Virus record (IMG/VR): IMGVR_UViG_3300043411_000921
Location: 177,400-241,399 of that record
DNA length: 64,000 nt
Reading direction: 5' to 3' (one strand)
The notes beneath the pieces are model-generated. The model made no database searches. It was not told where the DNA came from and worked only from the letters and a program-made list of their open reading frames with translations. A program made the position numbers and the translations under genes. Of the stretch, positions 22,101 to 55,714 are shown piece after piece (the stretch's first letter is position 1; each line of letters starts with the position of its first letter).

Positions 22101-22264
22101 TTTTCAAAGTCCAAGTAACTGCCGACGCTAATGGGGACGAATGCTGGGCCTTTTTCGGCAGGGCCAATAATTGTGGCTGGGGTGCCTCCAACGGGGGTTG
22201 TCCTCTCTGTAAGGTCGAACTCCCGGTCGAAGTAGTTTGGAGCCTTGAATACTGTTTCTGGCAT
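19121..22264 (-). CDS. tail sheath protein 1 (gp18-like)
   Basis: KGPAFVP, PWFAPAGFDRG, NINPIV, INVKRM, LFEQN. Confidence 0.92.
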   Translation of the reverse strand: MPETVFKAPNYFDREFDLTERTTPVGGTPATIIGPAEKGPAFVPISVGSYLDFENKFGTVDAKYPATFAVQKFFEGKGSEVASANYVRVLGCGANSSSVDISLTETQGTVVNAGTKVVGAGATFVSGALQGRVQFLVANHHVQTNESFGFPMFTNNDSYSVLGLTPGISETVNLVRATLFTTPDSRFMVLSGASDSNGVYNPSAYASGLGTGEAAQVGTEGLMNGLFKLVLSSSAGNTFGSDDGFAGLRIYSASLDPNSEKYVGKILNTNPLDFDSKKHLLYLDYAVDNEVAALSASNSTATVALLSGSQYTNQFGTTFGEAFGLFNTRYTAPKTPFFISQPFGNVEYDLFQVESRDDGAYANDKYKISIANLLASTNPSTNYGTFSLMVRAFNDSDTDPQILEQFSNLSLDPNSDNYIIKVIGDKRTKFNFDAVDSDDRGLVVEGKYGNRSRLIRVIPSSQLDAGEVPAKALPFGFRGHQMPLTNVSLTDAINNVSRSRSMISGVSSSLVPGGALLSGSIVPPVPFRFTMTRNQLTASGTEFGAPSSQTVFDGRLFWGVKFERNNNDVLNVNTNTEINPVIASYTKFAGIEKQGVLTTGSQSDLLNNNKFSLAKVALNVTSMTDVTTGSPATLLREAAYLRNAAIDSNTYAATNFSDRLTFASLLNSGSAVVFNNYSPYTKFTTFMQGGWDGVNIFDKQATRFTDRSTSTEVGLAGTYGVANSNYISPGALFSTVPVVSGRNYTGVSTANSCVVAYRTAIDIATNPNIANNNILAIPGQRDPLVTNYALEKNLAYGLSFYPMDIQPYDQNSLRIFDGETTRHASIKNTANAFITRALDNNAAGAYFPNIVMDDSVNRRRVTVPASIAAVAALSYNDRVKFPWFAPAGFDRGSLSFVVLTSVRVNQGDRNTLFDANINPIVKFPGANYVFFSQNTLQQATSALESINVKRMILELKRQVVQIANRMLFEQNTPALRQRFVSEASLVLSAIQLQQGIEQFAVICDGRNNTADDVNSNRMNAQIRVLPTRAVEYITMDFVLLPSGVTLG

Positions 22265-29761: not shown

Positions 29762-31912
29762 TCATTTTGTGGACTTCTTCACACCAGCAAGCAATTGCCA
29801 GCGGGAAGTATCGAAGCTAGGTTCAGCCGCTTGTGCTCCGAGCATTCTGGAGCCTCTCTCAGCAGATTCGGACAGGGTTGTTGTGCCCTTGGCTTTGTCC
29901 AAAACTCTGGAGATGCGGTTGTAAACTTCCTTGGCTTCTTGGATTGTTTGGGCCTTGTCGAGGTACTCAACGATTTTGCGCTTTTGCGCCCCGGACAAAT
30001 TGTCACGCACAAACAGTTTGTTGACATACAGAGACCTTGCAGTCAGCACTTGGGTTTCAGCCAGTTGACCACGAAGGATCTTGTTTTCTTGCAATGCGGA
30101 AACAGCTTTTGGTGTTGCTTTGCCGTTCTTCTTGCCCTTGGCGGACTCAGCAAGCATTTCGTCGGATTCTGGTTCTTCACCTTCGCCGTGTTCGGAACCT
30201 TCTTCTCCACCCATGTCGAGATCAATGTCGTCCAGGCCACCTTCTGCACCAGTGGAATCCATTGGTTGACCATCGACAGAAACATTCACGTTTTCAACGC
30301 TGCCACCGTCAACACCATCAAGGTCAATGGTGAGAGAGAGATGATCAGCAATGTCACCTTCGGAATCATCCATTGAAACTTCTGCTTCCTCGCCACCAGG
30401 AGCTTCGACTTCTTCCTCGGCAGCAGCAGCAGCAGCAAGTTCGGCTTGTTCTTTGAGAGCCTTCAGGCGAGCACGAATCTTCTTGGCTTCAGCAACAACT
30501 TCTTCATCGGAGATTTCGAGCATCATGTCATCTCCATCAGAAATGACTTCTTCGCCCTCACCTTCTTCGCCCTCACCTTCTTCGCCGTCGTAACCCATCT
30601 CAGCCATCATTGCGGCAACTTCCTCTTCCAGTTGTTCCAGAAGAGATTCACCAGAAGGCTTGCCCGGCCAGTCTTTCTTTTCCTTGGTTGGGAAAGGAGC
30701 CTTCTCAGCTTCTGCCTTTACTCCGGCTGTGTTTCCAGAAGACTTCTTGGCGTGTTCGTCAGAACCACCTTCGGATTCACCCGCAGGGCTAACTTTGCCT
30801 ACGTTGTGCTCAAACCCTTCTGCCCCTTCGAAAAGTTGACGAAGCAGAGCTTTTACTGATGTGTTTTGTGTTGCCTTAGACATTGTTTTTGTACCCTTTA
30901 CAAGCGGAATTGCGAGATAACTATTGATAACAGCGAGGTTTTCCCGCAGAAGACCAATGCGGTGCTCCTCAAGACGAAAAGTGCTGTTGGAAATCAACTT
31001 CGCTTTGTTGAGACTTTCCAAACCTTCATAAAGACGGAACAACTCTTTTTCTTGAGCCTTCACTGCTCCTTCTGACAAAGGAGAATTTCCTGGTTTCCTA
31101 AGAGCCAAGATTTCTTCTTCCTTTGCTTCGAGCATTCCTTTCAAGGCTTCGTAAGCCTCACTCATCATCGGAGCTTGTTCCCCTGGAGCAGTGACATCTT
31201 CCGCATTTGCAGCAATCGGAGGTTTCGCTGCTTGTTCTTTGATGAACTTGGCAACAACCTTATGGATCTCTGCCAGAGGACTTGGGGCGGGAAGCTCTTC
31301 TTCGGGTGATGGAGGAGGAACGGCTGTGTCCATCCCTGGAACGGGTGGAGTTGCTGGGGGAGGCATTCCTTCTGTTGCAGCAGCCATAGGATCCGCAGCA
31401 GGAGGCGTTGCATCCATTCCTGTTGGTGGAACTTCCGAAGTTGCTGTCATTGCTGGATTGGTTTCTTTTTGGAAGAGAGCATCCACGGGAATGACAATTT
31501 GTTGTTCCCCAGCGGGACCAACGTCAATCTTTCCAAGAACGGGAGAACCAGGGGAAGCGATTGGAGGAGAAGCTGCTGAAACGGCTGGTGGCATGGAAGG
31601 CATTCCAGTTCCAGACATTGGAGGTGGAGGTGCAATTTCCGCAGAGGTTGGTGTTGGGGAAATTGGTCCTGTTGCACCAGCATCTGGGCTTGGGGCAGGA
31701 GGAGCGGGAGGAGGGAGTTCTTCTGCTGGGAGTGATTCCTCTTGTTCCAGAATGATCCCTGAAATTTCCTTGTCGATCATTTGTTTGATGACTGGGGCAA
31801 CGGCTTCAAGCACGGCTGCTTTTGCTTCTGCTGTTGCTGCCTCACGAAGTTTTCTCGCTTCAATCAAGGCTTCTTGAAACAGTGGGGTTGTTGTTGACAT
31901 CATGTTCTCCAA
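29762..31912 (-). CDS. prohead scaffold/core protein (gp22-like)
   Basis: Acidic and Pro-rich, coiled coils, many LxE sites, C-terminal RWQLLAG; directly upstream of the MCP. Confidence 0.75.
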   Translation of the reverse strand: MENMMSTTTPLFQEALIEARKLREAATAEAKAAVLEAVAPVIKQMIDKEISGIILEQEESLPAEELPPPAPPAPSPDAGATGPISPTPTSAEIAPPPPMSGTGMPSMPPAVSAASPPIASPGSPVLGKIDVGPAGEQQIVIPVDALFQKETNPAMTATSEVPPTGMDATPPAADPMAAATEGMPPPATPPVPGMDTAVPPPSPEEELPAPSPLAEIHKVVAKFIKEQAAKPPIAANAEDVTAPGEQAPMMSEAYEALKGMLEAKEEEILALRKPGNSPLSEGAVKAQEKELFRLYEGLESLNKAKLISNSTFRLEEHRIGLLRENLAVINSYLAIPLVKGTKTMSKATQNTSVKALLRQLFEGAEGFEHNVGKVSPAGESEGGSDEHAKKSSGNTAGVKAEAEKAPFPTKEKKDWPGKPSGESLLEQLEEEVAAMMAEMGYDGEEGEGEEGEGEEVISDGDDMMLEISDEEVVAEAKKIRARLKALKEQAELAAAAAAEEEVEAPGGEEAEVSMDDSEGDIADHLSLTIDLDGVDGGSVENVNVSVDGQPMDSTGAEGGLDDIDLDMGGEEGSEHGEGEEPESDEMLAESAKGKKNGKATPKAVSALQENKILRGQLAETQVLTARSLYVNKLFVRDNLSGAQKRKIVEYLDKAQTIQEAKEVYNRISRVLDKAKGTTTLSESAERGSRMLGAQAAEPSFDTSRWQLLAGVKKSTK

Positions 31913-33267: not shown

Positions 33268-33888
33268 TTATTTCTTCCTCATCGAGAGAATATCGTTTGC
33301 TACTCGATCTACCAAATCAGCTTTAGTGAAAACCTTTCGAACGACTGATGGGTCATACTCTTTTGCTTCAGCAAGATACATGAAGGCTTGCGGAGTCGAT
33401 GGTTCACTCACAAAGTCCCAGCAAATAATCTGAAGATCTTCTTGAACAACGTTGACGTTGTTTTCTTTCTGAAGAGAACCAAGTGCTCGGCTGGAGATTC
33501 CAGGTCTGCACTTTCTGCTGATAAGAGCTTCAATGATTTTGCCGGAAGGTGTTGGGAGGATTTCAACCTTTCCATAAACCACATCCCCTTCCATCCAGAT
33601 CTCTCTGATGACGTGTGAGATGTTTTTCATGTTAACGATTGGTTCGTTGGCATGATCCAGTTCCCCAAAGGCTCTGTCTTCTCTGATGAGCTTCTCGTAG
33701 TTCCGAACTTCACGCTGGAGGATGTCTCTTGGGTAGACTCTTCCGTTTTGGTTCAGGGTGTTTGCCTTTTGAAGAATACCCTTGAGAATGAGTGGTTTGC
33801 CTTCAACGTAACTGTTGACTGCTTCGTCGTCATATTCAAAACTTGCAACTTCTTTCAAGAGAAGAGTTTTGTTGTTTGGGGTTGTCAT
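33268..33888 (-). CDS. prohead core protease (T4 gp21-like)
   Basis: NQNGRVYP, GELDH, SH, TPSGKI, GISSRALGS, DFVSEPSTPQA. Confidence 0.95.
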   Translation of the reverse strand: MTTPNNKTLLLKEVASFEYDDEAVNSYVEGKPLILKGILQKANTLNQNGRVYPRDILQREVRNYEKLIREDRAFGELDHANEPIVNMKNISHVIREIWMEGDVVYGKVEILPTPSGKIIEALISRKCRPGISSRALGSLQKENNVNVVQEDLQIICWDFVSEPSTPQAFMYLAEAKEYDPSVVRKVFTKADLVDRVANDILSMRKK

Positions 33889-39600: not shown

Positions 39601-40142
39601 GTTACTCCATAGGCCAAATCATCTATGTTTTGTCTGAAAAGACCCAAGTGGTTCTACCAGGAATAGTTTGTGAAGAAATCAATCACAAAACACTGGATGG
39701 AATCAAAACGTCTTACCGCGTTGCTATTGGCCCAGCAAACAAACAACGGGTTGTTGATCTTACGACGGTTGATGGTGAGGTCTATGGAGATTTGCAAGAA
39801 GTCAGGAATGTTCTCATTGGACGCTTGACAGCTTTCGTTGACAACCTTTGCAACACCACAAACGAACGTGTTCAGCAATGGTATGGACAAAACAACGGAC
39901 AAAAATCTCAGCCTGCAACGCCAAATGGCAAGCTGGATCCAAGTGATCTCATCAATGAAGTCGATTCCAGCCCGGCACAACCACAACAACAGCAATCTGT
40001 TCAGCAGCCGCGAACTGTCCCAGCACATCATGCGAATGCAGCGGGAAGGTACGCAGATCCAGAACTCTTTTCAAGGGAGTTTGTGGACAATGATGGCGTC
40101 GTGAAGAAAATTCAAATCAACGTTCCAGGATTCCAAGAGTAA
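39597..40142 (+). CDS. hypothetical protein
   Basis: ATGA-coupled; SH3-like start YSIGQIIYV. Confidence 0.7.
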   Translation: MSYSIGQIIYVLSEKTQVVLPGIVCEEINHKTLDGIKTSYRVAIGPANKQRVVDLTTVDGEVYGDLQEVRNVLIGRLTAFVDNLCNTTNERVQQWYGQNNGQKSQPATPNGKLDPSDLINEVDSSPAQPQQQQSVQQPRTVPAHHANAAGRYADPELFSREFVDNDGVVKKIQINVPGFQE

Positions 40143-41881
40143 TGTCAACATCAACAACAGCAACACCTGAAACCTTTCCAGTGATGGAAGTTACGTTTGG
40201 GCAAGAAGGTTTGAAACAGATTCTTGAAGGAGCAGAAGTTCTTTACAAGGCTGTGAAATCGACAATGGGGCCTTCAGGCAACAACGTCATCATTGACAAC
40301 GGACAGACAGCCCCTTTCATAACAAAAGACGGTGTAACTGTCGCAAAAAGCATTCGTCTTCGTTCAAAGATTCCCAGCATTGGTGCTGAACTCATCAAAG
40401 AGATTGCTGGGAAAACAAACGAAAACGTCGGGGACGGAACCACGACTTCTGTGGTTTTAGGTTATTCCCTTCTCTTCCAAGGCAACAAGGTTATTTCCGC
40501 TGGACACTCTGCTGTTGAAGTGAAACGTGGAATGGATCTTGCAACCGCAAAGGTTATTGAATGGTTGAAGGAGCACGCAACTCAAGTCAACGACCCAGAA
40601 CAAATTGTAAATGTTGGAACCATTTCAGCAAATGGTGATCGCTCTATTGGGGAACTTCTTTCCGAAGCAATCTCAAAGGTTGGACAGGATGGCATCATCA
40701 CCATTGAACCAGCTAAATCCGTTAAGACAACTTTGGATGTTGTTGAAGGTTTGCAGTTTGAGTCTGGATTCGTCTCCCCTTACTTCGTCACAAACCAAGA
40801 AAAGCTCACCGCTGAACTAAATGATCCTTTTGTGTTGATCACCAACAGGAAGATTTCCTCTCTCCAAGAAATCCTCCCAGTGCTGGAGTTGACAGCAAAC
40901 ACCAATAAACCCCTGTTGATTATTGCTGACGAGATTGAAGGGGAAGCTCTTCATACGTTGCTTGTAAACAAAATGAAGGGAGTTGTTTTCTCCTGTGCGG
41001 TCAAAGCTCCTTCTTATGGAGAAAACCGAACAGATATTCTCTCAGACATTGCTTTGGTGACTGGAGGGAAGGTCTTTGACTCTTCTTCTGAAAAACAAAT
41101 TCGTCAAGCAAACCTTCACGACCTTGGAAAATGCAAGAAGGTTATTGTTTCGAAGGGAACAACAACACTTGTTGTGGATAACAAGGAGAAGAAGAAAGAG
41201 ATTGATGAGCGTGCAGAACAACTTAGGGCTCTTCTGAATTCTCATGCTGGATTGGATGAACTCAAGAGAGACAACACGAAGAAAAGACTTGCCAAACTTT
41301 CTGGTGGTATTGCCGTCATCAAGGTTGGTGGTTCAACCGAAGTCGAAATCTTTGAGAAGAAAGATCGTGTTGATGACGCTTTGAACGCAACGGTTGCTGC
41401 CGTTCAAGAAGGTATTCTTCCAGGAGGAGGAACAGCATTGTTCTATGCTGCTGAATGGCTCCAGAAAGAAATGACAACAAACGAAGATTTCTTGAAGTTG
41501 ACCGATGATGAATTGGCTGGAGTTAGAGTGGTGATTGAAGCTGCTCGGCAACCCCTGAAAGTTATCGTTGAGAACACAGGAAAAAGCCCAGACGTTGTTA
41601 TGAATGAACTTCGGAACTATGACAACCGCAAGGCAACAAAGCTTCTTGAAGAGATTTCTGGAAAGACTTCAAAATCAATTGAGGTTGTGGATGTTTCGAT
41701 CAAGGAGTCTTTGGCTGGAAGGTTGCGTCAGGGATATGATGCTTACAACCACGTCTATGGAGACATGATTGAAAAAGGCATCATTGATCCTTTAAAGGTT
41801 GAAAGAAGTGCGTTGGAGTATGCTTGTTCGGTTGTGGGACTTCTTCTGACAACGAACGCGATTGTTGTAACTGATCAATGA
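40142..41881 (+). CDS. groEL: chaperonin GroEL
   Basis: TMGPSG, ITKDGVTVAK, GDGTTTS, KAPSYG, RLAKLSGGIAVIKVG, GILPGGG, GIIDPLKV. Confidence 0.97.
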   Translation: MSTSTTATPETFPVMEVTFGQEGLKQILEGAEVLYKAVKSTMGPSGNNVIIDNGQTAPFITKDGVTVAKSIRLRSKIPSIGAELIKEIAGKTNENVGDGTTTSVVLGYSLLFQGNKVISAGHSAVEVKRGMDLATAKVIEWLKEHATQVNDPEQIVNVGTISANGDRSIGELLSEAISKVGQDGIITIEPAKSVKTTLDVVEGLQFESGFVSPYFVTNQEKLTAELNDPFVLITNRKISSLQEILPVLELTANTNKPLLIIADEIEGEALHTLLVNKMKGVVFSCAVKAPSYGENRTDILSDIALVTGGKVFDSSSEKQIRQANLHDLGKCKKVIVSKGTTTLVVDNKEKKKEIDERAEQLRALLNSHAGLDELKRDNTKKRLAKLSGGIAVIKVGGSTEVEIFEKKDRVDDALNATVAAVQEGILPGGGTALFYAAEWLQKEMTTNEDFLKLTDDELAGVRVVIEAARQPLKVIVENTGKSPDVVMNELRNYDNRKATKLLEEISGKTSKSIEVVDVSIKESLAGRLRQGYDAYNHVYGDMIEKGIIDPLKVERSALEYACSVVGLLLTTNAIVVTDQ

Positions 41882-42904: not shown

Positions 42905-43930
42905 GTGAATATGCACACCCAAGGGCAAGCCATCGCATTCATTGAAAGACTTTTTGGTCCAGCCAAGCTGACCAACAATGGTCTCAATGCCAATGTTCAT
43001 TGCCCCATCTGTGCCGATCCAGACCCAAACAAAAAGAAGTTGGCAATCAGGACGGATTGCTGGCTCACCCGATGCTGGGTTTGCAATTTTAAGTCCAAGA
43101 CAATTTATCCTCTCATTCGGCGCTACAAGCCCGAATACGGCGAGGAATTTCTCGTAACGCTAAATGGTGCCTCCTTGGTCTCGGAAGCCGAGGATAATGC
43201 CTCCAGGCTCGATTACGGGGCATCCATTTCACTCCCCGTTGGCTTCCAACTTCTTGCTGAATGGTATGACCAAAAAGGCACCAAGGCAACCGACGTTCCT
43301 CTTCATGTTCGTCAAGCCTTGAGATATCTGACCTCCGAGAGAAAACTTTCAGAACGTGATCTTTGGTACTTCAAATTGGGAGTTACAGTTGTTGACGAAG
43401 ACTACAAAAACAGAATCATCATTCCTTCTCACGACCAAGAAGGAAACCTGAACTTCTTCACGGCAAGGGGCTACAAGACTTTTGTCAAGCCGAAATACTT
43501 TAATCCACTTTTTAGAAGAGAAACGGCTGTGTTTAACGAACTCAACATTGATTGGGAAGACGAACTCACAATTGTTGAAGGTCCATTTGACTTGTTCAAG
43601 GTCAATGACAATGCGACCTGTTTACTGGGGAAGGAATTGACGATTCAGTGTGCTCTCTTCCGACAGATCGTCAAGCATAACACAAGAGTTCTTTTGTGTT
43701 TGGATAATGATGCGGTGAAGCAGACGCTAGAGGTGGCGAAGCTGCTTTATTCGTATGGTATCTCTGTCAGAGTGCTGGAGTTGCCAGATGGTCTGAAGGA
43801 TCCTGGTGACTTGAATTCAAGAGAAGAGTTTCAATCGCTGATTGAAACCAATGCCGTTGAATACAACGAGATGTATTCGTTGAGAAAGAAAGTAGACAAC
43901 ACAAATGCCAAAAATCGCCTTTTTGTCTGA
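42905..43930 (+). CDS. DNA primase (Zn finger plus TOPRIM, gp61/DnaG-like)
   Basis: CPIC..CWVC, YL..R, RIIIP, PKYFNP, VEGPFD, LDND, KDPGD. Confidence 0.9.
   Translation: MNMHTQGQAIAFIERLFGPAKLTNNGLNANVHCPICADPDPNKKKLAIRTDCWLTRCWVCNFKSKTIYPLIRRYKPEYGEEFLVTLNGASLVSEAEDNASRLDYGASISLPVGFQLLAEWYDQKGTKATDVPLHVRQALRYLTSERKLSERDLWYFKLGVTVVDEDYKNRIIIPSHDQEGNLNFFTARGYKTFVKPKYFNPLFRRETAVFNELNIDWEDELTIVEGPFDLFKVNDNATCLLGKELTIQCALFRQIVKHNTRVLLCLDNDAVKQTLEVAKLLYSYGISVRVLELPDGLKDPGDLNSREEFQSLIETNAVEYNEMYSLRKKVDNTNAKNRLFV
43113..43218 (+). repeat. family A element, copy 9 (inside primase)
   Basis: CGGCGC-TACAAGCCCGAA at 43124; GATAATGCC-TCCAGGCTCGATTA at 43202 (offset 78). Confidence 0.55.
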
Positions 43931-46900
43931 TATTCATTGGCGCGGAGTAACGAGGCATGAAGAATATCGTCAGGTATTTTCTCGTGTGTTTGAGACTCTG
44001 AAGACAGAGATCAAGCCTGATTACATCATGATCGGTGGAGATATTTTTCACACCAAGACTCAATCAATCACACCAGAAGTCATTGATTGCATCACCTGGA
44101 TGTTTAGAAGTCTTGCTGAAGTTGCTCCGGTTTACTCCATCCTGGGAAACCACGATGGAAACCTGACCAATGAAAACAGACAAGACACAATCAGCCCAAT
44201 CATCTCAGCAATGAACAATCCCAGAGTCACTCTCTTCAAGAAGAGTGGAAATCACATCATCCCAGGAACCAATATTAACCTGTGTGTGTTTTCTCCGTTC
44301 GACGAAGCTGGCTGGAATATTGTTTCCCCAGATGAAGACCTGATTAACGTCGTGATGTTTCACGGCGCTGTAAAAGGCTGCAAGACCGATTCTGATTGGG
44401 TTATGGCCTCGGGTGAAGTGGAACTCTCAATGTTCCAACCATATGATTTTGCTCTCCTTGGAGACATCCACAAGAATCAATTTTTGGATTATCGGAGCCA
44501 CTCTGGGCCAACAAGGGACATGAAGCCCTGGATTGGTTATCCTGGTTCCCTTATCCAGCAGAATTATGGAGAAGACAGAACGAAGGGGTTTCAGGTTTGG
44601 GATATTCGGTCTAAAACTGATTGGGACGTTTCCTTTCATCCAGTTTCCAACGACTATCAATTTATCACGGTTCCTTGGACAGGGGATGTTGAATCGACTC
44701 TGGGGGAAGCCCTGATTCTTGTTGATGATAACCTGAAAAACAAACGAGTCAGAGTCTCTGGTGGTTCTTCAACCATTTTTCCTTTGCAGAAGAAACAACT
44801 TGCCGATCTTTTCAAAGAGAAGCATGGTGCTGCTGAAATCTTCTTTTCCCCAGACCCCAAGAAGGAAGCAGAGCAAGATGAAAAAAGGATTCAGAGCAAG
44901 ACAACGAGTTTGAGGAATGACCCAGAAGAACTTTGCAGGCTTTATGACACCTTCACTGAAGCAGACACCAAGTCTTCTTCTTTAAGGGAAGATCAGAAGC
45001 AAGCAGCGAAGAAATTCATTCGCTCAACACTGACGAAGGTGAGGAACCAAGAAGAATTGGAAGAGGGAGCGTCCAGGGATATTGTTTGGAGTATCAAGGG
45101 ATTGGAATGGGAGAACCTGTACCGTTATGGAGAAGACGACAACCAAATCAACTTCTCCAGACTGAATGGAATTACAGGGATCTTTTCTCCAAACAGGACT
45201 GGAAAGAGTTCTATTGTTGGAGCGTTGATGTTTGCTCTTTACAACACGACTGATCGTGGTCCTGTGAAGAGTGCTTACCTCATCAACAAAAACAAGAGCA
45301 GTGGTTCTGCCAAGGTTGTTTTCAACGTTGCTGGAGTCGATTATGAACTTGAAAGAACAGTCACAAAATCAATCAAGCGCGGCGGAGTTGTTGATGAAGA
45401 AAAAGCAGCAACAAAACTTTCTCTGAATCGAATTGACAGAGAAGGAAACAAGACCGAGTTGGTATCAGAAAATGCCGATTCCAGAACGGACACGGATAAA
45501 GTTGTTCGCAAACTCATTGGAACATCCCAAGACTTCTTGATGACTGCCTTTGCTTCTCAAGGAGGAATGAATCGCTTCATCGAAGAAGGTTCAACCCAAA
45601 GGAAAGCAATCCTCAATAGATTCTTGGACCTGGATATTTTTGAGAAGCTTCACAAGATTGCAAACGAAGAACTCCAAGCCTGCAACACCAAAGCTTCAAG
45701 TTTTTCTGGTTCTCCAAAAGATATTGAAGCTTTGGAGGAAAAAATTCATCAACTGAATGTGGAGGTAGAGCACGCACAGAGTAAGCTGGATGATAGTAAG
45801 CCAAGGAGGGACTCAGTACGTTTGTGGTTGAAAGCTCATGGATATGAGAAGCGTCTTGAGTTGAAAACCAAGATCAAGCAACTGAATTCTCTTATTCCTT
45901 CACTGGAAAGGAGTTTGGAGTTGGGGAGGGTGGAATATCAACGGCTTCTCTCCTCGCAAGACAGAGTTGCTGCCGAAATGACCTCTCTTGAGAACTCTTT
46001 GTCTTTGGTGGAGGCGGAAACTGTTCTTGCTGAGAAACTGAAAACTCTTAGACATGAGACTTCTGTACTCACTCAATTTCTTGGAGAGTTGACAGCAGCA
46101 CAAAAAGAGTTGGTAAGAAAGGAAGGTAACATCAAAAAGTTGAGTGTTGTTCCTTGTGGAACTTCCTTCCCTTCCTGCCATTACATCAAGGATGCTCACG
46201 AAGATCAAGCAACCATTCAAAAACAAAAACTGCTGGTCGATGAAGAATCCCAAGCCTATGAAACTCAAAAGGCTTTGGTCGAATCCTTGAAAAAGGAGAA
46301 CGCTGAAAAACTCTTGGAGGAGATCAAACAGAAGAAAGGAAGACTCCAGCAAATTGAAATGGAGCAAGTCAGAGTTGAAGCTGCTATCAGTAAAACCAAC
46401 TCAGAAATCTCTGCCCAAGAAATCAAACTCACTTCCTTGAAAGAAGAACTGAAACAGGTTCAAAGTGTTTTGAACAACCAAGAAGACTTGGATGAGAAGA
46501 TTGCCGAAGAGCAAGAACTGGAACAAGAGTGCAAGGTTTGTGAGGACAAACTCAAAACACTCTGGCTCCAGCTTGGAGCAGCTACGAACAAACTAGAGCA
46601 CGCCAAACAAGATGCAACCAAAATTGCTGAGATTCTGGAAGAGCAGCTTGTTTATGACAGCATTGTTCGAGCCTTCTCCAAAACAGGAATCCCAGCCTTT
46701 GTGCTGAAAAACAAACTTCCAGCGATCAATGTCCAGTTGGATGGGATTTTGGGAGGAGTGGTCCCTTTCAGGCTTCAACTGGAAACTGAAATCGGGAGCA
46801 ATGCCTTGGATGTTTTCATAGAGGACAAGGACAGCAGGAGGGTTATTGAGCTTGCTTCGGGCATGGAGAAGATGATTGCCTCTCTTGCTCTTAGAGTGGC

Positions 46901-47129
46901 ACTGATAAACCTCTCAAGCCTGCCAAGGCCCGATCTGTTTATCATCGACGAATCGTTTGGTTCTCTGGACTCTGAAAACTGTGCAAGGGTCATCGAACTG
47001 CTCCAGTCAATCAAAAGCAGATTCAAAACTGTTCTCATTATCACTCACGTTGACGAAATCAAGGAAGCAGCAACCACGATTTTGACAATCAACAACAACG
47101 GAGCAACAAGTTCTATTTCCTTCCCGTGA
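43905..47129 (+). CDS. fused SbcD-SbcC (Mre11-Rad50; gp47-gp46) nuclease/ATPase
   Basis: SDIH, GGDIFH, GNHD, GDIH, YPGS; Walker A PNRTGKSS; coiled coil; ASGME, IIDE.FGSLD, ITH. Confidence 0.93.
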   Translation: MPKIAFLSDIHWRGVTRHEEYRQVFSRVFETLKTEIKPDYIMIGGDIFHTKTQSITPEVIDCITWMFRSLAEVAPVYSILGNHDGNLTNENRQDTISPIISAMNNPRVTLFKKSGNHIIPGTNINLCVFSPFDEAGWNIVSPDEDLINVVMFHGAVKGCKTDSDWVMASGEVELSMFQPYDFALLGDIHKNQFLDYRSHSGPTRDMKPWIGYPGSLIQQNYGEDRTKGFQVWDIRSKTDWDVSFHPVSNDYQFITVPWTGDVESTLGEALILVDDNLKNKRVRVSGGSSTIFPLQKKQLADLFKEKHGAAEIFFSPDPKKEAEQDEKRIQSKTTSLRNDPEELCRLYDTFTEADTKSSSLREDQKQAAKKFIRSTLTKVRNQEELEEGASRDIVWSIKGLEWENLYRYGEDDNQINFSRLNGITGIFSPNRTGKSSIVGALMFALYNTTDRGPVKSAYLINKNKSSGSAKVVFNVAGVDYELERTVTKSIKRGGVVDEEKAATKLSLNRIDREGNKTELVSENADSRTDTDKVVRKLIGTSQDFLMTAFASQGGMNRFIEEGSTQRKAILNRFLDLDIFEKLHKIANEELQACNTKASSFSGSPKDIEALEEKIHQLNVEVEHAQSKLDDSKPRRDSVRLWLKAHGYEKRLELKTKIKQLNSLIPSLERSLELGRVEYQRLLSSQDRVAAEMTSLENSLSLVEAETVLAEKLKTLRHETSVLTQFLGELTAAQKELVRKEGNIKKLSVVPCGTSFPSCHYIKDAHEDQATIQKQKLLVDEESQAYETQKALVESLKKENAEKLLEEIKQKKGRLQQIEMEQVRVEAAISKTNSEISAQEIKLTSLKEELKQVQSVLNNQEDLDEKIAEEQELEQECKVCEDKLKTLWLQLGAATNKLEHAKQDATKIAEILEEQLVYDSIVRAFSKTGIPAFVLKNKLPAINVQLDGILGGVVPFRLQLETEIGSNALDVFIEDKDSRRVIELASGMEKMIASLALRVALINLSSLPRPDLFIIDESFGSLDSENCARVIELLQSIKSRFKTVLIITHVDEIKEAATTILTINNNGATSSISFP
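46824..46928 (+). repeat. family A element, copy 10 (weak; inside SbcC part)
   Basis: CAGGAGGGTTAT at 46835; GCACTGATAAACC-TCTC at 46912 (offset 77). Confidence 0.4.
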
Positions 47130-48116: not shown

Positions 48117-49046
48117 ATGACTCTTGGTCTTTGTTGCCACTTCCTCGAACAGCACGGTTCCTCTTACCAAAACTCCATCAATGAAAAGTCGATGCAGCTT
48201 GGTAGGTTCCGTGCTGGTGCCTATTCCCAATCCCATATTCACAACCTCTATACCAATAACCTCCAAGAAATCATTCGGCTGCTCCCAAAGCTCATCTCCA
48301 ACAACATCAAGTGTTTCAGAATCTCCAGCAGCACCTTTCCGCTGTTCGAGTTCAACAAGACTTTGATTGAGAACAGCAAGGATATTAGAGACCTTCTTAA
48401 TCGAGCGGGAAGGGGTTATCTGGGCGCTGGAATTAGGATGACTACCCATCCTGGTCAGTTTACCGTTCTAAGCTCAGATAAGCCTCCTACGGTCACGGCG
48501 GCTATCACCGAGTTGGATTTCCACGGTTGGGTATTTGACGCTATGGGATTTCCTCAAACTCCCGAATATGCCATCAATGTCCACGGTGGAAAATCTGATC
48601 GTCACCAACAACTCGTTGGTGGGATTTCCCGGTTGTCTGCCGGTGCCAGGAAGCGTTTAACGCTTGAGAATGATGAGAGTTCTTACAGTGTTCGCAAATT
48701 GCTTGCTGTTTCTGAGGAGACTGATGTTCCAGTTTGCTTTGACAGTCACCATCACACCTTTAATGAAGATGGGTTGAGTATGGAGGATGCTTATGGTCTT
48801 TCTGTTTTGACGTGGAAACGTCGTGGCTGCAAACCTCTCCAGCACATCAGCAACTCAACTCCAAATCTTCCACAGACAAGCTCGTTCCAGGACAAGAGAA
48901 AACACAGTGATTTCATTCACCACATTCCCAAGTGTCAGTTGGATGGCTTGCTAAAGGAGGAGGTTGATGTGGAAGTGGAAGCCAAGATGAAAAACTTGGC
49001 TTTGTTGAAGATGCGGGAGATGCTGCTAAAACATTCCGATGTTTAG
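48117..49046 (+). CDS. uvsE: UV DNA damage endonuclease
   Basis: LGLCC, FRISS..FP, HPGQF.VL.S, INVHGG, LENDE, FDSHHH, HIS, KHSD, EAKMK. Confidence 0.93.
   Translation: MTLGLCCHFLEQHGSSYQNSINEKSMQLGRFRAGAYSQSHIHNLYTNNLQEIIRLLPKLISNNIKCFRISSSTFPLFEFNKTLIENSKDIRDLLNRAGRGYLGAGIRMTTHPGQFTVLSSDKPPTVTAAITELDFHGWVFDAMGFPQTPEYAINVHGGKSDRHQQLVGGISRLSAGARKRLTLENDESSYSVRKLLAVSEETDVPVCFDSHHHTFNEDGLSMEDAYGLSVLTWKRRGCKPLQHISNSTPNLPQTSSFQDKRKHSDFIHHIPKCQLDGLLKEEVDVEVEAKMKNLALLKMREMLLKHSDV
48397..48501 (+). repeat. family A element, copy 11 (inside uvsE)
   Basis: TTAATCGAGCG-GGAAGGGGTTAT at 48408; CTCAGATAAGCC-TCCTAC at 48485 (offset 77). Confidence 0.55.
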
Positions 49047-50555: not shown

Positions 50556-51017
50556 ATGCCGATTCAACAAAAAGCACGTTATAGAATCTTGGCTGGGTTG
50601 CTGGATACTTCCTTCGGCAGAGCCTCAGAAAAACACCCTCAGTCCAACCATTTTCTCAAAATGACAATGCCACTCGAAAACACCATCGAGTGCAAAGCAC
50701 AAATCATTGTGAACATGGGTGACTCAACCAACATGTACGTCGCTCTCAGAAAGAAATTCCGAGAAGAACTCCTTGACCTCATCAAGAAGAGATTGGAGAA
50801 GGTCTCAGAAGAATATGCAGAGGCAGTGAAGCAATCCAACAACAAAGACTTGCTGTCCTACCGCAAGCAGCCTCATGAAAAACCTGCTGAGAAATCTGTG
50901 ACCCTAAAAGTGGATAACAACACCATCCAAGAGTGGCTTGAGCATGTTTCTATGAGTGCTTACCGAACCAACAAAACCTGCATCTATCACCTCAACTGCC
51001 TCGTAACCATCTCCTAA
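50556..51017 (+). CDS. hypothetical protein
   Basis: TAGTTA at 50538; upstream of terminase. Confidence 0.7.
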   Translation: MPIQQKARYRILAGLLDTSFGRASEKHPQSNHFLKMTMPLENTIECKAQIIVNMGDSTNMYVALRKKFREELLDLIKKRLEKVSEEYAEAVKQSNNKDLLSYRKQPHEKPAEKSVTLKVDNNTIQEWLEHVSMSAYRTNKTCIYHLNCLVTIS

Positions 51018-51039
51018 AGCCGTTTGCCTATTTACAGGC

Positions 51040-52683
51040 ATGGCTCTTACAAAAAAAGAACAAGTAGAAGAAGTTTTGAAGTGTGGGAAGGATCCCATCT
51101 ACTTCATCAAGAACTACCTTTACATCCAACATCCGACCAAAGGAAGGCTTCCCTTCCGTCTCTACCCATTCCAAGAAGAGTGTATTGAATCCTTCCTGGA
51201 CTACAAATACAACATCGTTTTGAAGTCCAGACAGCTCGGTTTATCCACAACAACAGCAGCTTATTGTCTCTGGATGGCTCTCTTCCGACAAGATGCCAAC
51301 ATCCTTCTCATGGCAACAAAACTGGAAGTTGGAAAGGGAATGATCGAGAAGATCAGAACCGCTTTCAAAATGCTTCCAGCTTGGATGTTGAACCTGCTGG
51401 AGTTGAAGGTTCCTGATGCCGAGTCCGTGAAATATATCAAGTTCACAAACGGATCAAAAATCACCGCGATTCCAACCGCAAAAGATGCTGCTCGCGGAGA
51501 AGCTGTAACCCTGCTTGTTATTGACGAAGCAGCGCACATCGAAAATCTCGAAGAATTATGGATGGGTCTTTGGTCCACCGTTTCGACTGGAGGAAGGGCG
51601 ATTGTGTTCTCAACACCTAAAGGAAGAAACTACTTCCAGCAACTTTGGGTTGGGGCAGAAGTACCAGAATTGGAACCAAACAAGGTTGGACAAATTTGTA
51701 AAGGTGTTGGCAGGAACGGATTCCACGGCATCAAACTCCCCTGGTTCGTTCACCCAGAAAGAGATGATGAATGGTTTGATGCTCAGTCGAGAGCACTGGA
51801 CGCAAGAGGTGTTGCACAAGAACTTCTGTGCAGTTTTGAAGGATCCAGCCTCACCTTCTTCTCACAAACATCAATCGACTACGTTCGCAACCTCTCTTTT
51901 CCTCCTGTTGCTTTCACTGGGCCAGAAGGAAAGGGATTGGACTTGCAAATTTGGAAGAACGCTGAGGAAGGACATCAATATGTTTTGTCAGCAGACGTGG
52001 CTAGAGGCGACGCAGAGGATTATAGCGCCTTCCATGTCTTCGACATAACCAAGTCTGAGGTTGTGGCTGAATACCTTGGTAAAATTCCTCCTGATCGGTT
52101 TGGAGAGTGGCTAATCGAGGTTGGTAAGAAATACAACATGGCTCTGATCGTTGCTGAAAAGAACACGGTTGGAATTGCCACAGCAATCAAGCTTCGTGAT
52201 TCTGGGTACCCAAACCTTTACTACGACCAGGAATTGGCCAACAAGATGTTGACCATGACTCCAGACGAGAAAAAGGATTGTCTTCCAGGGTTTACAATCA
52301 CTCCCAAGAACAGAGAAAAGATTCTGGAGAACCTGGAACAAGTCATCAGGAACAATCACTTGAGGCTTTATTCCACAAGGTTTGTTTCAGAGATGGAATC
52401 ATTTATCTGGAATGGTAAGCGTGGGCAAGCACTCAAGAAACGACACGATGACTTGATCATGGCAATGGCCATTGGCTTGCAAGTTTTCACTCCCAATGCA
52501 GAGCAACAGAATTACTTTGATGTTTTGGCAGCAAACCAAGGATTGGCGAAGGCTATGCTAGCTGGGATGTCGAGAGGCGGTGGAAGTGGAAAGCTTGGTG
52601 GGAAGAAGGTTCCAAGTTTCGTGAACAAGGAGACTGTTCAACTGGAGATGCAATTCAGAAAAGAGTTCGGTTGGCTGTATTGA
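51040..52683 (+). CDS. terminase large subunit (T4 gp17-like)
   Basis: KC.KDPIYF, LYPFQ, KSRQLGLST, ARG, LVIDEAA, STPKG, DVARG..DYSA, EKN, HDDLIMA. Confidence 0.96.
   Translation: MALTKKEQVEEVLKCGKDPIYFIKNYLYIQHPTKGRLPFRLYPFQEECIESFLDYKYNIVLKSRQLGLSTTTAAYCLWMALFRQDANILLMATKLEVGKGMIEKIRTAFKMLPAWMLNLLELKVPDAESVKYIKFTNGSKITAIPTAKDAARGEAVTLLVIDEAAHIENLEELWMGLWSTVSTGGRAIVFSTPKGRNYFQQLWVGAEVPELEPNKVGQICKGVGRNGFHGIKLPWFVHPERDDEWFDAQSRALDARGVAQELLCSFEGSSLTFFSQTSIDYVRNLSFPPVAFTGPEGKGLDLQIWKNAEEGHQYVLSADVARGDAEDYSAFHVFDITKSEVVAEYLGKIPPDRFGEWLIEVGKKYNMALIVAEKNTVGIATAIKLRDSGYPNLYYDQELANKMLTMTPDEKKDCLPGFTITPKNREKILENLEQVIRNNHLRLYSTRFVSEMESFIWNGKRGQALKKRHDDLIMAMAIGLQVFTPNAEQQNYFDVLAANQGLAKAMLAGMSRGGGSGKLGGKKVPSFVNKETVQLEMQFRKEFGWLY
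52001..52105 (+). repeat. family A element, copy 12 (inside terminase)
   Basis: GCAGAGGATTAT-AGCGCCTTCC at 52012; AAAATTCC-TCCTGATCGGTTTGG at 52089 (offset 77). Confidence 0.5.
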
Positions 52684-52695
52684 CCCGCAGCCCTA

Positions 52696-53970
52696 TCAAG
52701 GGACAGCTATCATTTTTCTAGTGGCTAGGTCAAAACCCTTTGGCAATTTTGTCTTAGCGTCGAATGTTGCTTCACGCAGCCCAATCGCATCTTCCAGGTT
52801 GCTCCCAGTAAAATCAACATCGTAAAACGCAGCACCAAAAAAATCAACATCCTGCAAATAAGCATTTCTCATGTGAACTCCTGAAAAACTTGAATGTTTC
52901 AAACTTGTGGCAAACAAGTCAACAGAGTTAAGAACACATTGAACGAAGCCACAAGCGTCCATTTTTGCTTCCCTAATCTTGGCACCCCCAAGTTGGCAGC
53001 GTGTGAACAAGCCTTTGAAAAGCTGGATTTTTGAAAGGTTTGCCTTTGCGAACCTGCAATTTATGAAGTTTATCCTTTGAAGGTTGGCGCCTGTGAAATC
53101 TGATCCTGAGAAATCCACGTCTTCAATGATCATGTTTTTTTCACTGAGGCCAATGGTTTTCAAGATTTGCTTGTTTTCCATGTTGCGGAAATCTGATCCC
53201 TGAAAGTCAAGAAGCTTTTTATCTTTCTCGAACAGAGAGGTGATGTGGCCCTTTGGAGCATCAAGAATGCTTGGTTTGTTATTCTTCTCCACGACACTTA
53301 CAATTTCGACTTGGGCTGTGTTGAAGAACACGGCTTGGTTTGGTTCGAGGTGATGGATAATTTGAAAACCATCATCAACAACCCCATCATATCCAAGCAC
53401 CTTCCAGAGAAGGTAAGACCATTTTCCGGTTGGGCCGCCACCACGATCTTTCTTCTGTTCGGGTTGAAAATCTGGATCAGCAGAATCGGCACCCGCCAAC
53501 AATCTTGTAATGTTCCAGATCATTGAACCGTGAAGATTTTGATTGTCTCTTGCCCCTCTTCTTGCATACTCAATCGCTTTTTGTGAAAATCCCCAAGCGA
53601 CAAGTTTTTCTACATCTTGCTTGAGGTTTTCCGCGGAATGAGTCGTGAAATCCAGCAATCTCGCTGTTGGTTTTGGTCTGATTACAACAGCATAAGGTCT
53701 GTTGATCGCAAACCTCATCATCTTCTTTCGATCAAGGAAGTAAGCATAGAAGCCAATAGGTGTCTTGTACTGATTCTTGAGATACAAACCCATCCTGGGA
53801 TAATCTGAGAAGTGAACAAACAAGTTCTTGTCTGTCTTGTTTTGCTGTTCAAGTGCAGCAAGTTGTTCTTGCCAAGGAGTTGGTTTCACTCCCAGTTCCC
53901 TCATGTGCCTGGAGATTTCAAGAAGAGTGAGAGACCTGATAAGAGGGGAAAGAGAATTGCTGCTGCTCAT
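52696..53970 (-). CDS. ART-like N-terminal domain fused to pentapeptide repeats
   Basis: FVHFS..PIGFYAY..GYDGVVD..EPNQAVFF; C-terminal VDFSG/SDFTG/ANLQR/ANLSK repeats. Confidence 0.7.
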   Translation of the reverse strand: MSSSNSLSPLIRSLTLLEISRHMRELGVKPTPWQEQLAALEQQNKTDKNLFVHFSDYPRMGLYLKNQYKTPIGFYAYFLDRKKMMRFAINRPYAVVIRPKPTARLLDFTTHSAENLKQDVEKLVAWGFSQKAIEYARRGARDNQNLHGSMIWNITRLLAGADSADPDFQPEQKKDRGGGPTGKWSYLLWKVLGYDGVVDDGFQIIHHLEPNQAVFFNTAQVEIVSVVEKNNKPSILDAPKGHITSLFEKDKKLLDFQGSDFRNMENKQILKTIGLSEKNMIIEDVDFSGSDFTGANLQRINFINCRFAKANLSKIQLFKGLFTRCQLGGAKIREAKMDACGFVQCVLNSVDLFATSLKHSSFSGVHMRNAYLQDVDFFGAAFYDVDFTGSNLEDAIGLREATFDAKTKLPKGFDLATRKMIAVP

Positions 53971-54038
53971 GGGAGATAAGTAAATTCATCCTTGAGAGGA
54001 AGATAAAAGTCAAGAAGACATATAAGAAGTCTTCCCTC

Positions 54039-54061
54039 TCCCTCTTCTGGTTATGTTCCAC
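54039..54061 (+). repeat. family B motif, copy 4 (intergenic)
   Basis: TCCCTCTTCTGGTTATGTTCCAC. Confidence 0.75.
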
Positions 54062-54082
54062 TCGTCCTTTGTTATCAAGGAG

Positions 54083-55714
54083 TTACGCGACACCCCCAAC
54101 TTTCCAAGAATTCAATGCCGAGATCAAATTGGGAAGTTCATCGTTCAGTTTTTTCAAAGCGCCTCTGAGATTTTCAATACTCGTTTTGAGAAGCTCGGCT
54201 TGTGCAGTTGGAGCGCCGCTGGCGCGACCCAATGGAGAATGACTTGAAACGTTTGTTCCTCTAAGAACGTTTTGCATAGCAGGGCTCACATCCTTTCCCG
54301 AAACCACTGCTTGAGTACCTCGATTGCTGGGCACTTGTCCGGGTGCTGCGGAAATGGAACTGGTCTCCACATTCTCCAAAAGATCAACGTTCGTTCCACT
54401 TTTGGGGACAACACTATTCAATGTCTGGAGAGCGGAAGCAAGGGCCTTCGTGCCATCCTGCAACGCAACAATCGCATTCTTTTTTGCGTTTCCGATAGCG
54501 TTGAGACCGTCTTTTAATTGCTTGGAATTACGCTGGGACAGGTTTCCACTTGGTCCGTAAGCAACCTCGGATGCCCCAGAAAGGACTTGCAAGTTGTCGT
54601 TGATGGTCTTGGTGGTATACCTTGGGGTTTGACTCCCTGGCCCTTCCCAGTATCTTCCACCTTCAGCAAACACAAACTTTTTTGCAGCCCAAGCAACCAA
54701 AGCAGCAAGCCCAGCCAAAATTGCTCCAATCAAGAACTGTTCATCCAACCTTCTTTGGGAAGTTGTTGCTTCTGCTACGAGTTCTCTGTTTGTTCCTGTG
54801 AGACGAGTTGTGAGTTGCTGGAGAGATCCGACTTCTGTCACAAGGATTTCACCAAAGTTGTTGATGTCCTGAATAACCTTGGCAAGTGCGGCACGGTTTT
54901 CTTCAACCTTATTTTTTCCCGCTTCATTGGGAGCAACACCTGGAACAGGAGCAACACCTGGAACAGGAGCAACACCTGGAACAGGTGGCAGCGTGGCTGT
55001 TGACACCGGCCCGCTCGTTTCACCGATAAAACGTTGCTGATACCTTTCAAAGTCACCTTCGGTCAGAATTCCGTTCTCAACCAAACTTTTCAAGCTTGAG
55101 AGAAGATTCAACACTTCGCTAACAGCCGACTGGGGTTGTGCTGATACTGGTTGAGTTCGTGCTCGTGCCAGAGTACCAGGAGAAGACGACACTTGTGCGC
55201 CAACGAGTGACTCAGTATCTTTGAGTGCCTTGGAAAGTGTTTTTGCTGAATCAACAACACCTGTGTTGCTTGAGTTAAAGAACAAAGGAAGAACCTTAGC
55301 ACATGCAGAAGCAACAATACCAGCTTGCCTTTTTTGCTCTGCTCTCCAGTTATCAGCAGCTTTTTCTACCGCTTTGAATTCTTTGGTTGGGGCAATCTTG
55401 TCAAAAATGGCCTTGGCTTCTTTTGTTCTTTGACCTTCGAAAGCATCAAGGAACCAAGCCAGGAACCAGATGGGAGTTTCTTTGTCGATGCGGGCGGAGT
55501 TTTCCCTCAACTCTACCAAGGCAGCTTGAATTTGCTGTGTCTTTTGACCTTCGTCCGTTGTTTGTTTTCCAACAGCGGACTTGAGTTTGTCACCCAGGGA
55601 GAGTTTGATCAGTTTGGCAACGTTGTTGTCTGAGAACAGAACGTTTGCCATTGCACTGAAGGCGCCTGCTGGGCCGATGACATCAGGGCCATTGAATGTG
55701 ATTTTGACTGCCAT
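54083..55714 (-). CDS. Ala-rich helical protein with one hydrophobic segment, putative ejected/internal protein
   Basis: 543 aa; ILTE and LDE sites; FLIGAILAGLAALVAWAA; TACTTA at 55727. Confidence 0.7.
   Translation of the reverse strand: MAVKITFNGPDVIGPAGAFSAMANVLFSDNNVAKLIKLSLGDKLKSAVGKQTTDEGQKTQQIQAALVELRENSARIDKETPIWFLAWFLDAFEGQRTKEAKAIFDKIAPTKEFKAVEKAADNWRAEQKRQAGIVASACAKVLPLFFNSSNTGVVDSAKTLSKALKDTESLVGAQVSSSPGTLARARTQPVSAQPQSAVSEVLNLLSSLKSLVENGILTEGDFERYQQRFIGETSGPVSTATLPPVPGVAPVPGVAPVPGVAPNEAGKNKVEENRAALAKVIQDINNFGEILVTEVGSLQQLTTRLTGTNRELVAEATTSQRRLDEQFLIGAILAGLAALVAWAAKKFVFAEGGRYWEGPGSQTPRYTTKTINDNLQVLSGASEVAYGPSGNLSQRNSKQLKDGLNAIGNAKKNAIVALQDGTKALASALQTLNSVVPKSGTNVDLLENVETSSISAAPGQVPSNRGTQAVVSGKDVSPAMQNVLRGTNVSSHSPLGRASGAPTAQAELLKTSIENLRGALKKLNDELPNLISALNSWKVGGVA
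54930..54985. repeat. 3 x 18-bp tandem repeat encoding PVPGVA
   Basis: GGAGCAACACCTGGAACA x3. Confidence 0.9.

Follow-up and report, generated by a model that had tools for sequence, protein, structure and literature searches.

A jumbo-phage protein combining a predicted ADP-ribosyltransferase-fold domain with a pentapeptide-repeat solenoid

A two-domain protein with a predicted ADP-ribosyltransferase fold

A 64,000-nucleotide stretch of DNA (hereafter the window), which forms the last 64 kb of the 241,399-bp IMG/VR virus record IMGVR_UViG_3300043411_000921, carries at positions 52,696 to 53,970 a gene for a protein of 424 residues. The N-terminal domain of this protein, on the evidence of its predicted structure, very probably has the ADP-ribosyltransferase (ART) fold, and its C-terminal domain is a solenoid of the pentapeptide-repeat protein (PRP) type. 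The ART-like fold is supported by two largely independent lines, the predicted structure and language-model features. The full-length AlphaFold2 (AF2) model has a predicted local distance difference test score (pLDDT) of 82 and a predicted template-modelling score (pTM) of 0.52, and the latter value indicates two domains without a fixed mutual orientation.

The AF2 model of the N-terminal domain (pLDDT 83, pTM 0.77) is confident and shows an α/β domain, with strands at residues 51-55, 73-78, 93-99, 105-107, 196-198, 212-215 and 221-228 and a helical insert at about residues 109-191. In an exhaustive VIA-align comparison with 48,161 PDB representatives, ranks 1-36 were occupied nearly entirely by proteins of the ART fold, with Z scores of 3.6-7.3 over 95-156 residues. 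The matched proteins include the cyanophage A4 pre-ejectosome protein (Z 7.3), MbcT (6.1) and AcrIF11 (about 5.2-5.3), as well as diphtheria toxin and its homologues, Xre-RES, NatT, ParT, cholix toxin, exotoxin A and many PARPs. It counts against the fold assignment that PDB Z scores of 5-7, taken singly, fall within a range for which the tool cautions that a common arrangement could be the cause; the PDB evidence for the ART fold lies in the uniformity of the match list and not in single Z values.

Searches of other structural collections point the same way. Foldseek returned ten matches in BFVD at E<=1e-3, spanning E values from 1e-7 to 1e-4, including (i) 'ART-PolyVal-like domain-containing' proteins of Yersinia phage fHe-Yen9-03 and Brevibacillus phage SecTim467 and (ii) a 'PolyVal ADP-ribosyltransferase' and a 1,495-aa Pf-WMP3 protein. 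Beyond these ten, at weaker E values, the matches extend to a PARP-domain protein, a polyvalent protein and a MuF fusion. A shape search of the ESM-Atlas retrieved clusters carrying PF18760 and PF26151 (AcrIF11). Among the 30 nearest named language-model clusters, 18 are ART-PolyVal (score 0.92, 177 shared features). The original prediction, made from the letters alone, had noted a resemblance to the ART domains of phage polyvalent proteins and had named structure prediction and Foldseek as the check; the predicted structure and the language-model features support this resemblance, and the check yielded the ART-fold matches in the PDB and BFVD listed above.

The active site of ART-PolyVal is formed by a His in strand 1, a Tyr in strand 2 and an Asp in strand 5 (PMC5512222). 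In the model, H53 lies within strand 51-55 and Y75 within strand 73-78, while D199 comes right after strand 196-198, in the motif GYDGVVD; in these positions H53, Y75 and D199 appear to match the H-Y-D elements of ART-PolyVal. Strand 6 (residues 212-215) opens with the invariant Q212, which is preceded by the invariant E209 three residues earlier, and this segment was compared with the position of the catalytic Glu in H-Y-E ARTs. Residues 14-170 of diphtheria toxin are aligned with model residues 46-232, and residues 22-178 of MbcT with model residues 48-232. From these aligned ranges we infer that H53 may occupy the position of H21 of diphtheria toxin and that the E209-Q212 segment may lie near its E148.

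The best PDB match, chain B of entry 9k3a, covers residues ~1120-1606 of a cyanophage A4 ejection protein (apparently gp27). The A4 structure paper describes no ART domain in this protein, and the match is a structural lead only. Similar matches in BFVD are A5HL40 (Pf-WMP3 gp26) and a protein of Arthronema virus TR020; these are large internal ejection proteins of cyanopodophages.

A large, apparently virus-restricted domain family

Residues 1-255 gave no match in Pfam even at E<=10, and the same was true of each of 23 relatives. Likewise, no match was found in PHROGs or NCBIfam, in the PDB by phmmer or profile, or by tblastn among 50,697 phage records. A PF18760 search of the phage record was silent, but so was its control, and the domain gave no match to the hidden Markov model (HMM) of that family.

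Relatives of the domain itself are abundant. A word-index search identified 32 of them, and an exhaustive profile search with the N-terminal domain identified 2,965 cluster representatives at E<=1e-3 (2,049 at E<=1e-10). In the genomes of 185,579 bacterial and archaeal species, a scan seeded with two peptide patterns, and limited by them, found no relative. On these sequence searches, the domain appears to represent a large, unnamed and seemingly virus-restricted family. The same phage encodes a second protein with an ART-fold domain and a PRP (483 aa; G000:C1:53493-54944 (-), locus L002 784-2235), which lies outside the window.

Conservation was measured on ~185 domain copies aligned to the family HMM. 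T70, P71, G73, Y75, Y77, D199, E209 and Q212 are each conserved at ~99%, and W152, W184, I205 and H206 at >90%; at position 53, 62% of the copies have His, 23% Ser and 7% Thr. The N-terminal motifs from which the ART likeness had been proposed, H, GFY, GYDGVV and E/Q..VF, are all present in the protein (as FVH53FS, G73FY75AY77, G193YDGVV198-D199 and E209PNQ212AVFF), with H53 the exception to the near-invariance of the key positions. Given this conservation, the motifs exceed what chance would produce.

Putative leader, upstream motif and possible packaging

In phage T4, the protease gp21 cuts behind (L/I)-x-E, and leaders of this kind are found on Alt and on the internal proteins. In the protein described here, residues 1-19 are modelled with pLDDT <50 and the putative leader ends in LLE18. 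The original prediction had proposed a head-targeting leader, as a guess. A plain [LIV]xE pattern is uninformative, as it is too frequent near N-termini, including those of most head-module and neighbouring proteins. Indirect support for a head-targeting leader comes from three features taken together: (i) the presence of an S77-type prohead protease in the phage, (ii) a longer N-terminal signature shared with other proteins, and (iii) a late-type motif upstream of the gene.

When the 321 predicted N-termini of the phage were ranked by their match to residues 2-22 of the target, the paralog came first, followed by two Pro/Ala-rich proteins of 253 and 162 aa that belong to no family. The pattern L[LIVT][LIV]LE occurs seven times in the proteome, four times within the first 19 residues (in the target, the paralog and the two Pro/Ala-rich proteins), and all four of the latter genes have the upstream motif. 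That both unrelated proteins also have the promoter motif does not depend on how the pattern was defined, and by chance it would occur with a probability of roughly 0.06 squared. In the wider family, Φ-x-E stands at the aligned column in 77 of the 114 members with the N-terminal domain, at a median position of 15.

The two Pro/Ala-rich proteins (G000:C1:38892-39653 (+), 253 aa, L010; G000:C1:49773-50261 (-), 162 aa, L014) are of low complexity, lie outside the window, have no Pfam or PHROG family and are preceded by TATTTA. Their first 14 residues end in LIVLE and LTLLE, respectively, and judging by sequence they are candidate internal head proteins. Within the window, a 716-aa head-module protein (29762-31912 (-)) is encoded between the genes in the protease and scaffold positions and the major capsid protein (MCP) gene; it has no family match, and the sequence at its N-terminus (…PLFQEALIE/ARKL) looks like a capsid-targeting sequence of the T4 kind that has a site of the gp21 type.

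The hexamer TATTTA is strongly concentrated in front of genes, since of the 19 copies in the genome 14 stand <=60 nt upstream of a gene, compared with 0.7 expected. The 8-mer TATTTACA is found upstream of genes in six of eight occurrences. TATTTA or xATTTAC precedes 20 of the 321 genes, including those for MCP (where the motif reads CATTTACA), the large terminase subunit (TerL), one sheath protein, a small neck-region gene and a weak amidase match; none of the 20 is a recognisable replication gene, and wherever a function can be recognised among them it is of the late type. In the window, the motif stands upstream of the genes at 29706 (MCP), 51040 (TerL), 19013 (sheath), 24637, 2718, 6918, 13588 and 26327. 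The paralog has a perfect TATTTACT at -19 in addition to the same N-terminal ΦΦLE signature, and a relative with 91% identity has ACTTTACT at the place of the target motif. TATTTAC(A/T) probably marks a late class of promoters, of which the target has a degenerate copy, and the sigma-like factor of the phage (56066-56953) may read it. A strict sigma70 regular-expression scan of the upstream regions retrieved one gene in 321, and a consensus promoter scan gave no minus-strand promoter for the ART-PRP gene.

Packaging in the head has been inferred for ARTs encoded beside terminase or portal genes, especially in myoviruses (PMC9503650). Here, the ART-PRP and TerL genes adjoin each other in convergent orientation, and in the relative L005 the homologue belongs to the head-neck module, with the MCP gene on one side and gp13 on the other. 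In the relative L003 the homologue is found beside gp32 and UvsX, and in L006 among the genes for RNA ligase, SAM synthetase and RNase T, on the opposite strand. On these sequence features, packaging of the ART-PRP protein in the head seems to us a little short of an even prospect.

The same enzyme could instead remain unpackaged, being made after infection as an intracellular ART for counter-defence or host takeover, in the manner of AcrIF11 or T4 ModA/ModB; the ΦxE segment would then be the first helix of the domain. The variable neighbourhoods in L003 and L006 favour this alternative, as do the continuation of the ΦxE segment into a conserved TRY..ETG, which may be structural, the high frequency of [LIV]xE near N-termini, and a sigma70-like TTGACT element further upstream. 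However, the late-type motif and the leader signature are common to the unrelated Pro/Ala-rich proteins, and the gene adjoins the terminase gene here and belongs to the head-neck module in L005. We regard the unpackaged alternative as unlikely, although it deserves to be kept in mind.

The pentapeptide solenoid as a putative specificity module

The assignment of the C-terminal half to a pentapeptide-repeat solenoid, already made from the sequence, is borne out by PF00805 (60.2 bits against a cut-off of 20.2, E 1.4e-16) and PF13599 (57 bits against 38); PF13576 passes its cut-off too. In the AF2 model, strands recur each 20 residues from ~277 to 400, giving ~6 coils. Foldseek matches of the solenoid include Qnr, AlbG, MfpA, HetL, SopA and NleL, and it further resembles Rfr proteins and designed solenoids.

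The C-terminal module is more variable than the N-terminal domain in both sequence and type. In about half of 92 diverse family members, the N-terminal domain is fused to a PRP, and the others carry LRV, DUF4116, HEAT or generic beta-helix repeats; in this sample, some members are solo domains or lie inside proteins of 1,000-2,000 aa. Identity in the N- versus the C-terminal domain is 76% versus 46% for the relative P0006, ~53% versus 25% for the next tier of relatives, and 47% versus 29% for the paralogs within the genome, so that the C-terminal module diverges about twice as fast. Such divergence and swapping are the pattern expected of a conserved catalytic head with a variable recognition module, and they fit this arrangement better than a DNA mimic. 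PRP-bearing relatives also share a conserved C-terminal cap motif, [FY]D..T.[FL]P.GF[DK]P.., in the family alignment.

In the original prediction, the solenoid was a DNA mimic of the Qnr/MfpA type that guides the enzyme to a DNA-binding host target, with gyrase named as one protein to look for; a restriction or CRISPR complex would be another such target. The solenoid does match QnrB1, AlbG, MfpA and EfsQnr in structure and sequence, and a DNA-binding defence complex can be disabled by a phage ART, as AcrIF11 demonstrates. DNA mimics, MfpA and Qnr among them, have a strongly electronegative character, whereas the solenoid has 19 Lys and Arg against 19 Asp and Glu residues, that is, a net charge of 0 (+2 with the tail); the C-terminal half has an isoelectric point of 8.5, and the net charge of the C-terminal domain ranges from -7 to +6 across relatives, the comparison being one of residue counts and isoelectric points and not of surface potential. 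Moreover, the scores against the NCBIfam equivalog models are about a tenth of the cut-offs (29.8 versus 240 bits for Qnr, 33.2 versus 360 bits for MfpA), relatives swap the module for LRV or HEAT repeats, and the PRPs HetL, Alr5209, Rfr, SopA and PipB, which are not mimics, match equally well. Guidance by DNA mimicry is therefore very improbable, and we hold with some preference that the solenoid is a specificity module.

Proposed mechanism

We propose that the protein is a late-made phage effector of two modules, an ART-fold enzyme and a tethered solenoid. The N-terminal module would be an ART of the diphtheria-like H-Y-[D/E] class, nearest to the ART-PolyVal and AcrIF11 domains of phages, and would most likely use NAD+ to ADP-ribosylate a host macromolecule. 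A flexible linker of 20 residues would tether this enzyme to the PRP beta-helix, most likely an interchangeable and fast-evolving scaffold for target recognition, as in SopA and NleL. The first 18 residues would act as a capsid-targeting leader of the T4 type, removed by the gp21-like prohead protease, and, like T4 Alt, the enzyme would be carried in the head and injected along with the DNA. We consider this model as a whole, a late-made, packaged and injected ART with a recognition solenoid, to be evenly balanced between being right and wrong; transferase chemistry on its own, judged from the modelled fold, is somewhat more probable.

Several observations weigh against the model. With respect to the enzyme, (i) no HMM-level link connects the N-terminal domain to any ART family (Pfam at E<=10, PDB profile), (ii) the triad assignment rests on the order of secondary-structure elements and on aligned ranges, (iii) the canonical His is replaced by Ser, Thr or Gln in ~35% of the family, where the other key residues are kept, and (iv) the invariant E209-x-x-Q212 has no described counterpart. 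With respect to expression and packaging, (v) the leader pattern was defined post hoc, after the sequences had been seen, and the Φ-x-E segment leads on to a conserved helix within the ART-fold domain, (vi) the target motif departs from the consensus by one mismatch, and ACTTTAC stands in its place in a close relative, (vii) the gene neighbourhood differs between lineages and offers no conserved neighbour that would point to a partner or target, and (viii) the metatranscriptome contigs that touch the ART-PRP gene cannot prove its transcription, strand or level.

An ART-like fold without transferase activity, either in an enzyme that degrades NAD+, as the RES-domain protein MbcT does, or in a binding module that is catalytically dead, would suit the presence of MbcT, Xre-RES and VPA0770 among the best PDB matches (Z 4.5-6.1), the unconserved canonical His and the unusual E..Q pair, but it is highly unlikely, as the nearest viral structures and language-model neighbours are ART-PolyVal and AcrIF11 and not RES, six polar or aromatic positions are ~99% conserved, which argues for catalysis, and a tethered specificity module suits an enzyme that modifies macromolecules better than an NADase.

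The injected-transferase model can be extended to the whole family. The protein would then be the founding example of a virus-restricted ART family of ~3,000 clusters, packed in the head via a cleavable leader and injected, in which exchangeable solenoids (PRP, LRV, HEAT) retarget the same catalytic head, with its non-canonical H-Y-D and E-x-x-Q site, to different host proteins. In this full form the proposal is speculative, and we would expect it to fail in at least one of its parts.

Comparison with known systems

ART-PolyVal (PF18760; Tox-ART-HYD2 clade) provides the closest structural and language-model neighbours of the N-terminal domain, with which it has in common a phage origin and a predicted delivery with DNA and, judging by the order of secondary-structure elements, may share the His of strand 1, the Tyr of strand 2 and the Asp of strand 5. 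Unlike ART-PolyVal, the present family has the additional invariant motifs TPxGxYxY, WNxTR and E-P-x-Q-A-V-F-F, a helical insert of ~80 residues and a conserved N-terminal helix. Its members usually consist of two domains, one being a repeat solenoid, whereas ART-PolyVal is part of a giant polyvalent protein. The word 'pentapeptide' occurs in neither of the two most relevant surveys (PMC5512222, PMC9503650), and a literature search by title found none suggesting an ART-pentapeptide fusion.

The anti-CRISPR mono-ADP-ribosyltransferase AcrIF11 (PDB 6KYF, 8DWQ) is likewise a small, divergent diphtheria-like ART recognisable by structure only. Its residues H-F-H-D are non-canonical, it has an acidic catalytic loop, and a role in target recognition has been proposed for its variable helical insert. 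Its match to the N-terminal domain has a Foldseek probability of 0.80 at ~11% sequence identity; it differs in being a single domain of ~130-180 aa without a repeat module or leader.

T4 Alt and the T4 internal proteins offer a parallel for the proposed delivery: a T4-like myovirus with an S77 protease, an ART among late genes, and an N-terminal Φ-x-E leader common to unrelated small proteins. This likeness is read from sequence, and Alt differs in being an ART of the R-S-E (Alt/VIP2) type without a PRP.

The solenoid shares with Qnr, MfpA and AlbG the right-handed quadrilateral beta-helix and a similar length of 6-9 coils, but unlike them it is not acidic, scores far below the family cut-offs and is fused to an enzyme; no sign of the C-terminal dimerisation helix emerged, though no search was aimed at it. 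SopA and NleL, which are among its structural and sequence matches, use a pentapeptide-like beta-helix as the substrate-recognition module of a delivered enzyme. They differ in having a HECT-like E3 ligase catalytic domain and the reversed domain order, and in being bacterial type III secretion effectors.

Significance

Domains of the ART-PolyVal and AcrIF11 types are already known, as are PRPs and capsid targeting of the T4 type. The novelty lies in a divergent ART family that current models miss, in the systematic way in which it is fused to exchangeable solenoids, and in the leader signature. T4 Alt, ModA and ModB as well as AcrIF11 are among the few understood enzymatic tools of host takeover and anti-defence. 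Target selection by such ARTs is not yet understood, as has been said explicitly of AcrIF11, and a conserved catalytic head with a swappable, fast-diverging solenoid would lend itself naturally to the study of target specificity. Pentapeptide repeats, mostly of obscure role outside the Qnr/MfpA group, would gain a function as well. Naming the family would annotate thousands of metagenomic phage proteins missed by Pfam, PHROGs and NCBIfam. The leader signature, if real, would allow head-packaged proteins to be predicted by rule from their sequences within a clade of uncultured jumbo phages, and if the proteins are indeed injected and retargeted by their solenoids, they would constitute a programmable system of injected ADP-ribosylating effectors.

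Gene layout and genomic context

The features of the ART-PRP gene and the prohead protease gene are listed in Table 1.

Table 1. Features of the ART-PRP gene and the prohead protease gene, in window coordinates
Feature	Coordinates	Strand	Basis
Whole gene, 424 aa + stop, ATG start, one open reading frame	52696..53970	-	Open reading frame call
Putative capsid-targeting leader, residues 1-18, MSSSNSLSPLIRSLTLLE, ending in a presumed gp21-type Φ-x-E site	53917..53970	-	pLDDT, shared signature
ART-fold domain (predicted), residues ~19-230	53281..53916	-	AF2, structure comparison, language-model features, conservation
Disordered interdomain linker, residues 231-250	53221..53280	-	pLDDT 37-41
PRP right-handed quadrilateral beta-helix, residues ~251-412, ~6 coils, net charge 0	52735..53220	-	PF00805, PF13599, PF13576, Foldseek
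C-terminal tail, residues 413-424 + stop	52696..52734	-	End of cap motif, family alignment
Upstream motif AATTTACT, 16 nt before the ATG, putatively of late class	53979..53986	-	One mismatch to TATTTAC(A/T)
Prohead serine protease, T4 gp21-type (Peptidase_S77)	33268..33888	-	PF03420, 8.8e-26

The source virus is a jumbo phage, an uncultured T4-like myovirus of freshwater and wastewater; CheckV estimates the completeness of the record at 66%. Besides the ART-PRP and protease genes, the window contains genes for a gp23-type MCP, a portal, two sheath paralogs, a T4-type TerL, GroEL, an SbcCD-like nuclease, UvdE and a sigma-like factor. The closest cultured terminases, those of Flavobacterium phage immuto and Microcystis phage Mel-JY01, are ~40% identical. 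Near-identical DNA is present in freshwater and wastewater metagenomes of six further studies.

In one wastewater DNA run, two alleles ~10% apart were observed within the ART-PRP gene (window 53182-54066), and in the same run the adjacent terminase (51000-53211) differs only by ~0.5%. This allele split fits a fast-evolving ART-PRP gene and is a single observation. One contig suggests that 252 nt are skipped (53527 to 53780), one side of the skip being supported by only 34 nt.

Upstream of the ART-PRP gene, on the same strand, lie genes for proteins of 121 and 543 aa. The latter protein (54083-55714 (-)), encoded directly upstream, has no family in Pfam, PHROGs or NCBIfam; it has PVPGVA tandem repeats and one hydrophobic helix, and its gene is syntenic in the close relatives L008 and L009. 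The GroEL-type chaperonin gene (40142-41881 (+); phrog_5725, E 2e-147) has in its vicinity the SbcCD-like nuclease pair (42905-47129), UvdE (48117-49046) and the sigma-like factor. The sheath-like paralogs are encoded in tandem (15987-19013 (-) and 19121-22264 (-)) and measure ~1,000 aa each; both the duplication and the length of these proteins are unusual for a phage with a contractile tail.

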